A DNA stretch of 64,000 nucleotides, taken from contig NC_052160.1 of NCBI RefSeq assembly GCF_902713615.1, forward strand, positions 137,620,737 through 137,684,736, read 5' to 3'. Below the pieces are notes generated by a model. The model was not told where the DNA came from. It saw only the letters and a program-made list of their open reading frames with translations, and searched no databases. The position numbers and the translations under genes were made by a program. The stretch comes from Scyliorhinus canicula (lineage: Eukaryota). Below, one piece after another: positions 14,706 through 55,302 of the stretch; positions within the stretch are counted from its first letter, which is position 1, and each line of letters begins with the position of its first letter.

Positions 14706-14745
14706 ATGGAATTAATTGCTCTTCTAATTCTAATGCCGGTATCAA
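14706..14745 (+). CDS. Gene 2 exon 1, signal peptide
   Basis: ATG GAA TTA ATT GCT CTT CTA ATT CTA ATG CCG GTA TCA A|gtgagt = MELIALLILMPVS. The phase-1 end joins the phase-1 V exon (A+AT = Asn). Confidence 0.85.
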
Positions 14746-15584
14746 GTGAGTTCCTTTTTTTTTAAACGTTGATCTTTAATATTCTTAAAAAGCATTTTTT
14801 TGCAACCTGAGCTGATGCGACCCAGAAACACTGAACTGACTCAGGCACCGGTGGTTTTGTCGGTGTGAGCTGCGGATGGTGTTACAAGTTGTAGGTGTTG
14901 TTGGAAAAGCCACGAATCTGCTCCTCCAGCATCTTCAATCAGCCTTCGCTCCTTTCCGCGCTTCCCCCTCTGCATTCTCACTCCATCTGCCTCGTCGCAG
15001 CTCTGTCTTCCCTGAAACACCAGCTCTTCATCAATCACAGGAAACTAACTTTGTTCTCTTTTCAGTTTAACACAACAAGTTCTGTGGGGGGGGCACCTTG
15101 ACCTCAGTAAAAGCTCTCAAGCAGATTCACATGGTGTTCCCTCAGCAGGTTGCATAGATGAATAGGGAACCTAGAAGACATGTATGTGTGTCTTAAATGG
15201 CAAACTGTGGAATATTCTTCTTCAGTATAGAAGTAGATTTGGAGAACAAAGACTCACAATCGGCTGTTTTATTTCAGCCAAGATCACCAGCGTGAGAATA
15301 GACATTGAGTGGTTCTTTCTGTTTAAATGAATCTGCATTGCGACACATGTCTTTACCAGGGATTATTTCATCATATTTCTCAGCATCAGCTCGGAGCTGA
15401 CAATTCTCTTCCTGTACCTGTTCATGTCGTCCAACATCATTTCCCATCTGCTTTTTAGTGACAAAATTAGCACAGGCCACCTCCTTAGCCAATTCAGTCT
15501 TTGTGTGTTTACAAACTAACGGAGCCACAGAGAACCTGCCTTAACCCCCCTGTCCCCCTATTGCATGGTTATCTTGTTGAATCA

Positions 15585-15888
15585 GAACCGTAGAATTTCT
15601 GCAGTGCCGAAGGAAGCCATTCAGCCCATTGAGTCTGCACTGACCCTCTGAAAGAGCAGCCTACCAAGGCCCACAACCCCAACCCTATCCCCGTAACCCA
15701 TAACATCACCCAACTTGCACATCTTTGGACACTAGTCTGTGGGATGAAACCGGAGCACCCGGAGGAAAACCACACGGACACAGGCAGAAAGTTCAAACTC
15801 CACACAAAAAGTAGCCGAAGGCCAGGATTGAACCCGAGTCCCTGGCACTGTCAGGCAGCAGTGCTAACCACTGTGTCACCCTGCTGTC
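15585..15888 (-). mobile_element. HE1-like SINE (copy B ~38320-38620); further copies at ~13400-13570, 47560-47870, 48850-49160 (+), 50905-51250 and 52540-52860
   Basis: Shared core AAACCGGAGCACCCGGAGGAAACCCACGCAGACACGGGGAGAA and a tRNA-like head. Confidence 0.8.
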
Positions 15889-16164
15889 TCTCAGACATTG
15901 ATGCTTAGATTTAAAACCCTAGTTTCAGTTTGATCGACATCACTTTCAAACTTAGTGTGAAGTATTTTCATATTGTGGTCACTCTTTCCGAAATACTATT
16001 ATTAATTAGCCTATATTCATCGCACAATACTGGATCTAAATTAGCAAGTTCCTCAGTGCACTATTCTAGACATCCATCTCCCATACATTCCATGAATTCA
16101 TCTTCCACAACATTAATACTAATTAGGTTCACCTAACCTATTAGTACATTGATAAATAAATAAT

Positions 16165-51589: not shown

Positions 51590-52250
51590 CCTAATTTCCT
51601 CGAGGAGGTGATGGTGAGCTGCCTTCTTGAACCGCTGTAGTCCATGTAGGTACTCCCACTGTGCTGCGAGGGAGTTCCAGGATTCTGAGCCAAAGACAGC
51701 GATGGAATGAAGATATATTTCTAAATCAGGATGGTGTGCGTCTTGGAGGGGAGCTTGGTGACAGTGGTGTACCCCTGCAAATGCTGCTCTCCTACTTCCA
51801 GGTCGTAGAGAGTGAAAGTTTGGTAGGTGATGCTAAAGGAGCCTTTGTGAGATGCTGCACTGCATCTTGAAGATGGTACACACGGCTTCCACTGTGTGTT
51901 CCTGGTGCAGGGAGTGAATGTTCAAGGTGTTGAATGGGTTGCCAGTCAAGCGGGCTGCTTTGCTCTGGATAATGTTCAGCTTCTTGAGTGTTGTTGGAGC
52001 TGCATTCATCCAGGCAAGTGGAGAGTATTCCATCATATTCCTGACTTGTGCCTTGTAGATGGTGGACAGGCTTTGGGGAGTTAGGAGATGCATTACTTGC
52101 CACAGAATTCCAGGTCCCTGACCTGCTCTTGTAGCTACAGTATGTATATGGCTTGTCCACTTCAGTTTCTGGCCAATGGTAAACCCAGGAGATTGATAAT
52201 CTATACATAATTGGTTTTAACAGGTGTAACACCACAATATCCAACTTACC
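51590..52250 (-). mobile_element. CR1-clade LINE 3' fragment
   Basis: STIYKAQVRNMMEYSPLAWMNAAPTTLKKLNIIQSKAARL...VCTIFKMQC. Confidence 0.8.
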
Positions 52251-55146
52251 AGGGGCTGTTTAGCACAGGGCTAAATCGCTGGCTTTGAAAGCAGACCAAG
52301 CAGGCCAGCAGCACGGTTCGATTCCCGTAACAGCCTCCCCGAACAGGCGCCGGAGTGTGGCGACTAGGGGCTTTTCACAGTAACTTCATTTGAAGCCTAC
52401 TCGTGACAATAAGCGATTTTCATTTCATTATAATCAGACATAATCCTCTAACCGACTGAAATTTGCACTGAAACCATAGATAGAATCCTCCTGGATTGCA
52501 AAAAAAGGGGTCAGATGCCACTATCAACAGACCTTTTTATCATAGAATTTACAGTGCAGAAGGAGGCCCATCGAGTCTCCACCGGCCTTTGGAAAAAGCA
52601 CCCTACCTAAGCCCACACCTCCACCTTATCCCCATAACCCAGTAACCTCACCTACCCTTTTTGGACACTGAGGGCAATTTAGCATGGTCAATCCACCTAA
52701 CCTGCACATCTTTGGACTGTGGGAGGAAACCGGAGCACCCGGAGACACGGGGAGAAAGTGCAAACTCCGCACAGACAGCAACCCAAGCCGAGAACCAAGC
52801 CTGGGACTCTGGAGCTGTGAAGCAACTGTGCTAACCACTGTGCTATCGTGCAGCCCCACTTGTCCCCTCTCCCTATCTCCTTGGACTATGGTTCTGTCTC
52901 TGGTTCCCTGTCAAGGTGACAATGCTACTGGAATCCTCAATCGGAGCCAATCTGTACTCCGCATGTCAAAACTGGCTGGTGCAAATTCAGCGAACCAAGA
53001 GATTCAGCGAACCAAGAGATTATGAAGCGGGTAGTAATCTCAGTGCTTGGCATAGTTCACACAGGACTGCCACGGCATCGTGAATTGCCGAGGAGTCTCC
53101 TGGATTGCAGCACATGGCAGTGTCCAGTTGGCCCAAGTTTTGGGGCCATAGCAGGAGGGTTCCCCCACCCATCCCCAAGGCGACAGAGATCCAGGACTAG
53201 CCGGTAACAATCCGGGGTCACCGAGCGGCTGGTGTGTTGGGAATGAGAGATAGCGTGAGGACTGGACGGTGTGAGTTGTGGGGTGTGAGAGGTGGATACC
53301 ATCATTGGTTGGTTAGGGCAGCCAAAGTCCAGCGAGGGAAGGCATATGGGGCGGGTGGGGGGGGGGGGGGGGGGGGGTAAATGTGCCATGGGGAATAAGA
53401 TCAGGGCAAGAGGATTGCAAAGGGTGTGGGTTTTACTAACTGTAGAATGTTTGGAACTCCTGAGACCATGAAAGACACAACATTATGCAAGATCCTTTTT
53501 CCGCTACTTTCTGACCTATCTTAGTTTCCCCCCCATTCCGTGTAGTCTTGGTGATTCCCGAGCCTGCTCGGGCATGGCTGATCTTGGCTTTCATCTTCAT
53601 TTTCCCGGCATTCCCTATATCCCTTAATTCACGGAGTGACCAAGAATCTGTCATTCCCAGCCTTAAATTTATTCAACGATGGAGCGGCCACGACTCTCTG
53701 GGATGGAGAATTCCAAAGGTTCAAAACCCTTTGAGGGAAGTAATTTCTCCTCGACTCAGTCCTAAATGATTGGCTGCTTAACCTGAAGCTATGGCGCCAT
53801 GTTTTCGATTCCTCGACCAGTGGGAACAGGCTTTTGAGCGTCCGCCTTACCAAACCCCTTCTGGGTTTTGTAGGTTTCAACGCGATGGTATCTCACAGAT
53901 GAAACCAATTTACTCAGCCTCTCTTCATTGGACGTTCCCCCTCATTCCAGGTTCCACTTTAGTGAACCTTTGCTGTCCTGCCTCTGTATATCCTTTATTG
54001 AGTGTGGGGACGGCATTCCAGATTCAGTCTCTCAAAACCCCCACAACTATAGCGAAATATCTTTACTCATTTACTCCAAACCTTCCTAACCCTGATCCTT
54101 CATTCAAGTTCCTCAACTTGAAAAATAATGATAGAACAGTCACAAGAACAATAGACAGCAACAGAACATTTGCAGCTCTAGTATTCATTAGGTATGATAA
54201 AAGTCTGTGGTCAAACGTTAATACCTTTCCCCATGGGGACTATGGTGATCGGGCGGAAGGACAATCAATAATAATAATCGCTTATTGTCACGAATAGGCT
54301 TCAAATGAAGTTACTGTGAAAAGCCCCTAGTCGCCACATTCCGGTGCCTGTTCGGGGAGGCCGGTACGGGAATTGAACCAGCGCTGCTGGCCTGGTTCTG
54401 CATTGCAAGCCAGCTGCTTAGCCCACTGTGCTAAACCAGCCCCTTGTGCTATACCAGCCCCTGGCCCTCACGGAGGGAGGCTGGCGGTTGGGGACTCCAC
54501 CACCTTCCCACCTCCACCTCGATTAAGTCTGTGGCGCGAAGGCCTGAGGAGAGCCTTCCTGGCCCACGGGTAATGAGTGGCCTTGTCCTGCCACCCAGCG
54601 ATCGCCAAGCGAGGAACGTGACAAGCAAAACCATGCAGCGCTGCTTGTGGGCTTGGGCAGGGAGTTGGAGGAGTGGGGCGGGCGGGTGGGTGGGGGGGCG
54701 GGTTGTTGTTCTTGTTCAAAGACACTCAGTGCCTGATTGAAGGGTCAGCTGAGAATCACCCACCTACCCTTGCTGCCGATGCTCCTCCCCCGTGATCCCC
54801 TGACCCGCTCCCGCCATCACTCCGGCTATTTACTAGACCACGGGTGGGGGTCTGACCAGCAGCTGCCACCACCTCCCCGGTGCGCTGCCATTCAATAGAG
54901 CTGCCAGCACCTGGGTGGCCAGAAGCTCTCGGCAGGTGGCAGTTCTGCCCCTGGGGATCTTGATCCCAGGGAAGGCCTTCCACTGTCCGGCTAAGTGCCT
55001 GAATGACACTGAATACAGCAGCGCGCAGGAGTGTTGCTGGGTCTCCAGCTGACAGGCGAGGCTCGCTTTTCCTCCCTGAAATACCACCTGTCGGTAACAT
55101 TCTGCATCATTGTGGTAACGGTTTCCTTTTGTCTCAATTTCCTAAG

Positions 55147-55302
55147 GAGGACACAGAGGTGGCGTACGCCACTGTGAACGTGGTTCCCAGGCCTGACTTG
55201 GAAAATACTTACCTCAATCTTCAGGAAGCTCAAAGAACAGCCAAAGGCCGCGATTCTTCGGAAACTGTGGAATATTCCACACTTCATTTCGGCTCACAAT
55301 GA
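55147..55302 (+). CDS. Gene 3 terminal exon with ITIMs
   Basis: tctcaatttcctaag|GAG GAC...CAA TGA, phase 0. Encodes EDTEVAYATVNVVPRPDLENTYLNLQEAQRTAKGRDSSETVEYSTLHFGSQ*. VAYATV and VEYSTL fit the ITIM consensus (I/V/L/S)xYxx(L/V). Confidence 0.9.
   Translation, partial: EDTEVAYATVNVVPRPDLENTYLNLQEAQRTAKGRDSSETVEYSTLHFGSQ

Follow-up and report, generated by a model that had tools for sequence, protein, structure and literature searches.

Architecture of a CD300-like receptor locus in the catshark Scyliorhinus canicula points to an activating/inhibitory pair with a young chimeric member

Paired immune receptors are thought to arise when pathogens exploit an inhibitory receptor and the host answers with an activating look-alike. 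For CD300, KIR and LILR-type receptors it is established that ITIMs (immunoreceptor tyrosine-based inhibitory motifs) recruit SHP phosphatases, and that charged transmembrane helices pair with adaptors carrying ITAMs (immunoreceptor tyrosine-based activation motifs). Activating receptors are reportedly born from inhibitory ones recurrently, which Abi-Rached and Parham are said to have described for KIR and Ly49 in 2005, and hybrid genes formed by unequal crossover are familiar from the KIR hybrids and the Lepore-type fusions. In cartilaginous fish, the skate MDIRs are a multigene group of activating and inhibitory receptors with CD300/TREM/pIgR-like domains, according to the account of them in PMC3031540 (citing Cannon et al. 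2006). Here, we analyzed a window of 64,000 nucleotides from the genome of the catshark Scyliorhinus canicula (contig NC_052160.1, positions 137,620,737 to 137,684,736; all coordinates below are those of the window). It contains two complete, adjacent, single-V CD300-like receptor genes of the skate MDIR type, which we call gene 2 and gene 3, and the 3' half of a third, gene 1. We consider it likely, with a probability of roughly three in four, that genes 2 and 3 form an activating/inhibitory CD300-like pair, that gene 2 is a young chimera, and that fast change of the V exons followed its birth.

In its plan, the locus resembles the mammalian CD300 genes (CD300LF/CLM-1, CD300A/CD300C). These are likewise clustered, share the exon layout of leader, V, stalk, transmembrane and cytoplasmic parts with phase-1 introns around V, have a Ser/Thr/Pro-rich stalk, and end either in ITIM-bearing tails or in a charged transmembrane helix followed by a short tail. 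Both endings were found here, one in each complete gene, by a motif scan and by the presence of an Arg helix. Unlike the mammalian receptors, the catshark genes are without the C-C' disulfide, and the Arg sits in a shark-specific WxxFRW helix; identity to the mammalian proteins is only 25-34%, a family-level likeness. As far as the cited account of them goes, the MDIRs of skate and zebrafish share with the catshark genes a multigene organization, a CD300/TREM/pIgR-like V domain and the coexistence of activating and inhibitory forms. Both signalling types occur in the window, and the Arg helix is also carried by shark proteins with V+C2 and three-V ectodomains; membership of the catshark genes in this group is by description only, and each member of the pair has one immunoglobulin (Ig) domain.

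With KIR and Ly49, the locus would share an activating ectodomain derived from an inhibitory neighbour, an intronic breakpoint, fast replacement change, and within-species pairs that are closer to each other than orthologs are. It differs from them in belonging to another Ig family and another vertebrate class, and in that the catshark activating tail would have come ready-made from gene 1 and not by point mutation. The V subtype, with its WC and DxGxYxC motifs, is also that of pIgR, FCAMR and FcmuR, but those receptors are multi-domain or long-stalked and bind polymeric Ig, and the catshark genes have no such feature.

The initial annotation of this DNA had left open whether the cluster was already described. 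Both complete genes exist as automatic RefSeq predictions, and the receptor kind is published, in the form of the skate MDIRs; our literature searches on shark or catshark CD300/CMRF35 found no paper on the S. canicula locus. What is known of the family is thus unchanged by this locus, since its genes are in RefSeq and their kind has been known since the skate MDIRs were reported in 2006. What is new here is the one-step chimeric origin, the fast change of the V exons and the conserved Arg-helix cassette. Both donors (genes 1 and 3) can be seen, as can their product (gene 2) and one of the breakpoints, which would make the locus a clean, datable case from cartilaginous fish. It also offers a system for studying the pace at which activating partners are replaced, the loops that are under selection, and the adaptor that serves the shark Arg-helix receptors.

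A protein search with the V-exon open reading frame (ORF) at 42308-42802 matched two Scyliorhinus canicula RefSeq proteins, together with relatives in S. torazame, Mustelus asterias and Pristiophorus japonicus. Exon sets were derived by an exhaustive splice-site search that was required to rebuild the RefSeq proteins exactly, and a single solution was obtained per gene. The spliced model of gene 2 equals, residue for residue, the 198-aa RefSeq protein "CMRF35-like molecule 3", and that of gene 3 the 261-aa "CMRF35-like molecule 1". Gene 2 lies on the + strand and begins with its ATG at position 14706. It consists of a 40-nt leader exon that ends in phase 1 (14706-14745), a V-set Ig exon (19488-19811; Pfam V-set, E 1.1e-11), a Ser/Thr/Pro-rich stalk exon of gene-1 type (21273-21360), an exon for the Arg transmembrane helix with the motif WTLFRW (26004-26120), and a last exon of eight codons, SPGQQMKG, plus the stop (28833-28860). 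AATAAA signals 3' of the coding end are present from 29125.

Gene 3, on the same strand, has a leader exon (37436-37475), a V-set exon (42306-42629) that matches Pfam V-set and has RNA contigs on 42392-42579, a stalk exon (44009-44114) with RNA contig joints on both sides, an exon for a neutral transmembrane helix (48040-48146) that is also covered by RNA contigs, a cytoplasmic exon (50285-50337), and a final exon holding the ITIM VAYATV, the motif YLNL, the ITIM VEYSTL and the stop (55147-55302), whose end is position 55302. AATAAA follows at 55913 and 55950. Every exon of both genes is supported by the exact rebuild of its protein, and the motifs of the final exon by the motif scan. The first view of this DNA, that it holds two spliceable genes with identical leaders and V exons about 94% identical, agrees with our comparison: the leaders match at 40/40 nt, and the V exons differ at 20/324 nt (93.8% identity), or at 16 of the 108 amino acids (85% identity). 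It had also counted ten splice junctions, all GT-AG and of compatible phase. The consensus and the phases hold for every intron, although the number is nine (four in gene 2, five in gene 3). The leader-V and V-stalk junctions are phase 1 in both genes, as is usual for Ig exons. The genes were further said to be invisible in the ORF track, which is true of a prokaryote-style ORF track only, both being predicted in RefSeq.

The two genes end in opposite signalling modules. The transmembrane helix of gene 2 is LWTLFRWLLFAALAVCTVSVTCW (it begins LWTLFRWLLF) and carries an Arg about six residues deep, counted from the outer face; the tail, about 16 residues long, contains no ITIM, immunoreceptor tyrosine-based switch motif (ITSM) or ITAM in a motif scan. 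Gene 3 has a neutral helix and two ITIMs, VAYATV (215) and VEYSTL (251), whose tyrosines are 36 residues apart, with YLNL (232) as a YxN site between them. On both counts, an Arg-containing helix with an ITIM-free tail in gene 2, and 261 residues with a neutral helix and two ITIMs in gene 3, the initial annotation had read the sequence correctly.

We hypothesize that gene 3 acts as an inhibitory receptor, whose ITIM tyrosines would be phosphorylated once the V domain binds a ligand and would then recruit SHP-type phosphatases. Gene 2 would be its activating-type counterpart, and could signal only through an acidic-helix ITAM adaptor, because it has an Arg in the helix and no signalling motif in its short tail. 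The Asp of CD3-zeta/FcR-gamma-type adaptors also lies about six residues into the helix from its outer end, and the position of the Arg suggests, by analogy, a partner of this type. Neighbouring genes with identical leaders and V domains that are 85% identical in amino acids, one ending in an Arg helix and the other in ITIMs, have the architecture of paired receptors, and at this level of gene architecture the paired-receptor status of the locus, proposed at the outset, is supported.

Gene 2 itself is, as read from the sequence, a chimera: its leader and V exon are of the inhibitory lineage, and its stalk, Arg helix and tail are those of gene 1. The window contains a large tandem duplication with a period of 22,853 bp, whose copies (1-19959, the left end cut by the window, and 22854-42777) are 96-98% identical by self-BLAST. 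In each copy, an Arg-transmembrane exon and a short last exon are followed by a spacer of about 9 kb, a leader and a V exon, and the similarity ends at about 19953|42771, 142-148 bp after the V exon. The Arg-transmembrane exon (2291-2407, + strand) and last coding exon (5123-5150, + strand) of copy 1 belong to gene 1, whose V exon lies left of the window; by sequence comparison, their twins in copy 2 (26004-26120 and 28833-28860) form part of gene 2. Gene 3 has the second leader and V exon. Beyond the end of the duplication, genes 2 and 3 have little in common. Their stalk regions are 72% identical over only 67 nt, and their transmembrane exons cannot be aligned. In contrast, gene 2 and gene 1 differ at 2/117 nt in the transmembrane exon and at 3/29 aa in the stalk, and share the last exon, with V domains that are only 58% identical.

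A maximum-likelihood tree of V domains, built from shark sequences, places the V domains of genes 2 and 3 as sisters (98/95), next to the ITIM gene 8611 of S. torazame (87/94), and puts that of gene 1 together with S. torazame 8610 (100/100). The latter gene is 29.4 kb long in the S. torazame assembly, where 8611 begins 61 bp after it; the annotation has no gene between the two, and hence no counterpart of gene 2 there. This annotation appears to represent the state before the event, and gene 2 a young chimera. In our model, the S. canicula lineage underwent a 22.85-kb tandem duplication or unequal crossover that broke in the phase-1 intron following the V exon. The event would have copied promoter, leader and V exon of the inhibitory gene to a place ahead of copies of the gene 1 stalk, Arg helix and tail, making an activating-type copy of an inhibitory ectodomain in one step.

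Several minor features accompany the duplication. Just past the breakpoint, intron 2 of gene 2 contains a perfect 37-bp tandem repeat of 4.2 copies (20442-20597; 100% matches). Copy 2 has about 845 extra bp at 24393-25237, with an 18-bp overlap (1525-1542) at the junction, and copy 1 has about 975 extra bp relative to copy 2 at 11833-12958. Both copies include a GC-rich block (about 60% GC; 9400-12000 and 33100-35800) with overlapping Pro/Gly/Arg-rich ORFs on both strands.

The V exons have diverged far more than the rest of the duplication. Intron 1 differs between the copies at 59/4720 nt (1.25%) and other parts at 1.5-2.7%, while the V exon differs at 20/324 nt (6.2%), five-fold more than intron 1 (Fisher p = 6.5e-8) and also more than its immediate flanks (p = 0.013). 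Of these 20 changes, 19 are replacements and one is silent; the Nei-Gojobori estimates are dN 0.079 and dS 0.014, a ratio of about 5.5 (one-sided binomial p = 0.049). Divergence at replacement sites is about six times the intron rate, and therefore does not come from relaxed constraint alone. When the changes were polarized with S. torazame and other sharks, about six derived states fell on each of the two lineages. The differences are concentrated in space: in our own mapping on the strands of the AlphaFold (AF2) model, 11 of the 16 amino-acid differences lie in strand C and the CC' loop or in the end of F, the FG loop and the start of G, and seven of those 11 fall within 12 residues after the YWC motif. 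We take the C-CC' and F-FG-G face to be the ligand face of the solved CD300 domains. After the duplication, both V exons would thus have changed fast at the amino-acid level, mainly on this face.

Gene conversion from gene 1 was considered as a source of the V divergence and rejected, because only one of the approximately six residues derived in gene 2 matches gene 1, and only 1 of the 20 changes is silent. Conversion from an unseen paralog may have contributed, but a diverged paralog would have imported silent changes too, and only one was found.

The same replacements allow a different view of the locus, in which genes 2 and 3 act independently and bind different ligands. The 16 differences between the V domains, their clustering in the C strand/CC' loop and F-end/FG-loop/G-start, and their presence on both lineages would suit this view, and it is compatible with the pair described above. 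On the other side, the domains remain 85% identical with a conserved framework, and comparable differences separate the members of known paired receptors, KIR and CD300A/C among them. We therefore regard separate ligands as unlikely, although this is the strongest of the alternatives that we considered.

RNA evidence came from contig sets of S. canicula in which only the exonic share of the queried stretches is present, and four such sets were mapped on 42280-48170. In run X3, a single 322-nt contig joins 42629|44009 and 44114|48040 and continues for 79 nt further downstream. In run X4, from a different study, a 694-nt contig joins 44114|48040 and runs 501 nt past the transmembrane exon; by its length, this extension would fit exons 5 and 6 of gene 3 plus the 3' untranslated region. 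Other RNA contig cover of introns in 42280-48170 consists of repeats. Mapping of RNA to the predicted junctions had been suggested as a check by the initial annotation; the stalk-to-transmembrane junction of gene 3 is confirmed by RNA contigs, and the V-to-stalk junction less firmly. For gene 2, runs X8, X3 and X4 (three studies) contain 0.19-0.22 of the words sampled from 19488-21360. Exons make up about 0.19-0.22 of this stretch, and by our own count about 83% of the 31-mers of the gene 2 V exon are specific to gene 2; if gene 3 alone were expressed, a share of about 0.03 would be expected from the count of shared 31-mers. These values fit the presence of both gene 2 exons in RNA without the intron between them.

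CD300 domains have two disulfides, the canonical B-F bond and an extra C-C' bond whose first Cys belongs to the WC motif in strand C (PMC3031540). Both extra cysteines are kept in gene 1 and in the relatives from S. torazame, Mustelus and Carcharodon. In gene 3, the strand-C Cys is kept but unpaired, the C' position being Ser. Gene 2 also has Ser at C' (codon 58), and its strand-C Cys has become Arg (WR) through a TGT to CGT change at codon 50 (19595, corresponding to 42413 in gene 3). This looks like a stepwise and recent loss of the extra disulfide inside a family that possesses it.

Some of these observations weigh against the proposal of an activating/inhibitory pair with a chimeric member. 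Regarding the event, the left end of the duplication and the V and stalk exons of gene 1 lie outside the window, so that the left breakpoint is inferred, its expected place being the post-V intron of gene 1 about 2.9 kb to the left of position 1, and the absence of gene 2 from S. torazame rests on annotation and the 29.4-kb spacing. Regarding the V exons, the excess of replacement over silent changes is borderline by itself (two-sided Fisher p = 0.09). In the RNA data, the 42629|44009 joint has only 27 nt on its V side, with one difference between the V exons of genes 2 and 3, and the X3 contig therefore cannot be assigned to either; the V-to-stalk and stalk-to-Arg-transmembrane junctions of gene 2 rest on the RefSeq model and on the word shares. 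Neither protein has the extra C-C' disulfide that marks CD300 domains. Finally, the putative adaptor of gene 2 is a class and not a named partner, and a survey from 2014 found no homolog of FcR-gamma in sharks (PMC4016189); beyond that survey, a search of the literature on DAP12 or FcR-gamma in sharks found nothing specific.

Part of this evidence would also suit the idea that unequal crossover left gene 2 as a neutral by-product with no activating role, either a non-signalling decoy or a decaying gene. It has lost both cysteines of the extra disulfide, no adaptor is known for it and FcR-gamma was reported absent from sharks, its junctions rest on the RefSeq model and word shares, and it is very young, with about 1-3% divergence in the flanks. 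However, its reading frame is intact and its splice sites are canonical, its exonic words are found in RNA-type runs of three studies, its replacement divergence exceeds what relaxed constraint alone would give, and its Arg-helix cassette has been kept across three shark orders. We think it improbable that gene 2 is such a by-product, and favour this reading less than separate ligands.

The conservation of this cassette emerged when stalk, helix and tail of gene 2 served as query in an exhaustive HMMER search; a word-based search with the Arg-helix region had returned only the two S. canicula proteins. The motif W-x-x-[FI]-R-W-x-x-F...C-[ST]-x-S-[VI]-T of this helix is present in five proteins of other sharks: Carcharodon carcharias XP_041051254.1, a protein of Chiloscyllium plagiosum, one of Hemiscyllium ocellatum with a V + C2 ectodomain, S. 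torazame gene 8612, and a three-V protein of Mustelus asterias named 'pIgR-like'. By sequence, the WxxFRW Arg helix is a reusable cassette, placed on receptors predicted to have one, two or three Ig domains, and this fits the 'modular' character of the MDIRs. The inhibitory tail is conserved as well, the order ITIM - YxN - ITIM being kept in five species (S. canicula, S. torazame, Mustelus, Pristiophorus and Carcharodon).

Pairs like that of genes 2 and 3 seem to occur in other sharks. The 572-aa Carcharodon protein XP_041051254.1 consists of an Arg-helix unit followed by an ITIM unit, whose V and stalk parts differ at 2 of about 145 aa, and judging from its sequence it is evidently two adjacent genes fused in one RefSeq model. 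In Mustelus, CLM5, which has an SPGQQ-type tail and a model from which the helix exon is absent, and CLM8, which has ITIMs, are 88% identical over 169 aa of leader, V and stalk. A comparable pair is thus present in Mustelus and, judging from the fused model, probably in Carcharodon. The pairs within a species are more alike than orthologs are, as would be expected if paired receptors were repeatedly renewed or homogenised.

Taken further, these comparisons would suggest that a paired receptor was born here by one intron-to-intron crossover, that the ligand-binding loops of both copies then changed adaptively, that the process recurred independently in Mustelus and probably in Carcharodon, and that the WxxFRW cassette points to a dedicated signalling adaptor. 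We put this fuller account forward tentatively, as one slightly more likely to fail in some part than to hold throughout. If true, the cassette would point to such an adaptor in a lineage once reported to be without FcR-gamma (PMC4016189).

Two of the shark models deserve separate mention. XP_041051254.1 also holds a partial internal V repeat. S. torazame scyTo_0008610 maps to 2290-2397, 5114-5214 and 14435-14659 of the window, and the model seems wrong, with the Arg-transmembrane exon in another frame and an end just upstream of the next leader; an Arg-helix receptor would therefore be hidden in the S. torazame annotation.

The relatives also bear on the integrity of the assembly. If the tandem duplicate were an artefact, with two haplotypes placed in series, the locus would have a single V-bearing gene, and identities of 96-98% can indeed be reached between haplotypes of very polymorphic immune loci. 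The window has no N gaps, however, the copies differ by indels of 0.8-1 kb and continue into different sequences that yield two distinct complete genes, and runs X3 and X4 hold words from the stretches of both gene 2 and gene 3. Moreover, the fused Carcharodon model implies an activating-then-inhibitory layout, and Mustelus has a comparable pair. We consider an assembly artefact very improbable.

The placement of the V domain follows from sequence and fold searches. Both V exons match Pfam V-set. Against PDB chain sequences, the best single-domain match is mouse/human CD300LF/CLM-1 at 60 bits, followed by CLM-6/CD300C and CD300A. pIgR reaches lower summed E-values, because its five domains add up, yet no single domain exceeds 36 bits; NKp44, FcmuR, TIM, TLT-1 and TREM2 come after CD300 and pIgR. 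For the V domain of gene 3, AlphaFold gave a model with a predicted local distance difference test score (pLDDT) of 90.7. In a Foldseek comparison of this model with PDB structures, CD300LF is again best, with a template-modelling score of 0.88, a root-mean-square deviation of 1.5-1.6 Å and 32-34% identity, ahead of CD300A, pIgR D1, CD300C and TREM-1/2. Among Swiss-Prot models, the top 19 fold matches are all CD300 members, and TMIGD3, FCAMR and pIgR follow. PDB titles name CD300LF, which is the closest solved relative, as a norovirus receptor. Both receptors have one V-type Ig domain with CD300 as nearest relatives, and this domain is, on sequence and predicted fold, CD300-type within the CD300/pIgR/TREM group, where the initial annotation had placed it.

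It is hardly credible that genes 2 and 3 encode pIgR-like receptors for Ig transport or Fc binding in place of CD300-like sensors of lipids or patterns. In favour of this, human pIgR has the lowest E-values when its five domains are summed, and the name 'polymeric immunoglobulin receptor-like' has been given to a Mustelus protein that carries the same Arg helix. But the catshark proteins have a single Ig domain where pIgR has at least two in tandem, CD300LF outscores pIgR per domain (60 bits, with no pIgR domain above 36), CD300 members provide all the best folds, and neither ITIM tails nor charged-helix tails are features of pIgR.

Within the 64-kb window there are no further exons of the family, no additional Ig exon beyond the one V exon per gene, and no flanking non-receptor genes. 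The surroundings of gene 3 contain retroelements. In its intron 3, reverse-transcriptase-like ORFs of a non-LTR (non-long-terminal-repeat) element occupy 44421-46294, mainly on the - strand. RNA contig depth over this interval is in the thousands, which identifies it as a highly repeated transcribed element outside gene 3 proper. Downstream of the gene, a nearly intact LINE-1-type retrotransposon lies on the + strand at 58058-63424. It has an ORF1 of 281 aa (58058-58903) as well as endonuclease (59754-61166) and reverse-transcriptase (61172-63424) parts, which are separated by one break. A strongly positive GC skew at 56-64 kb coincides with this element.

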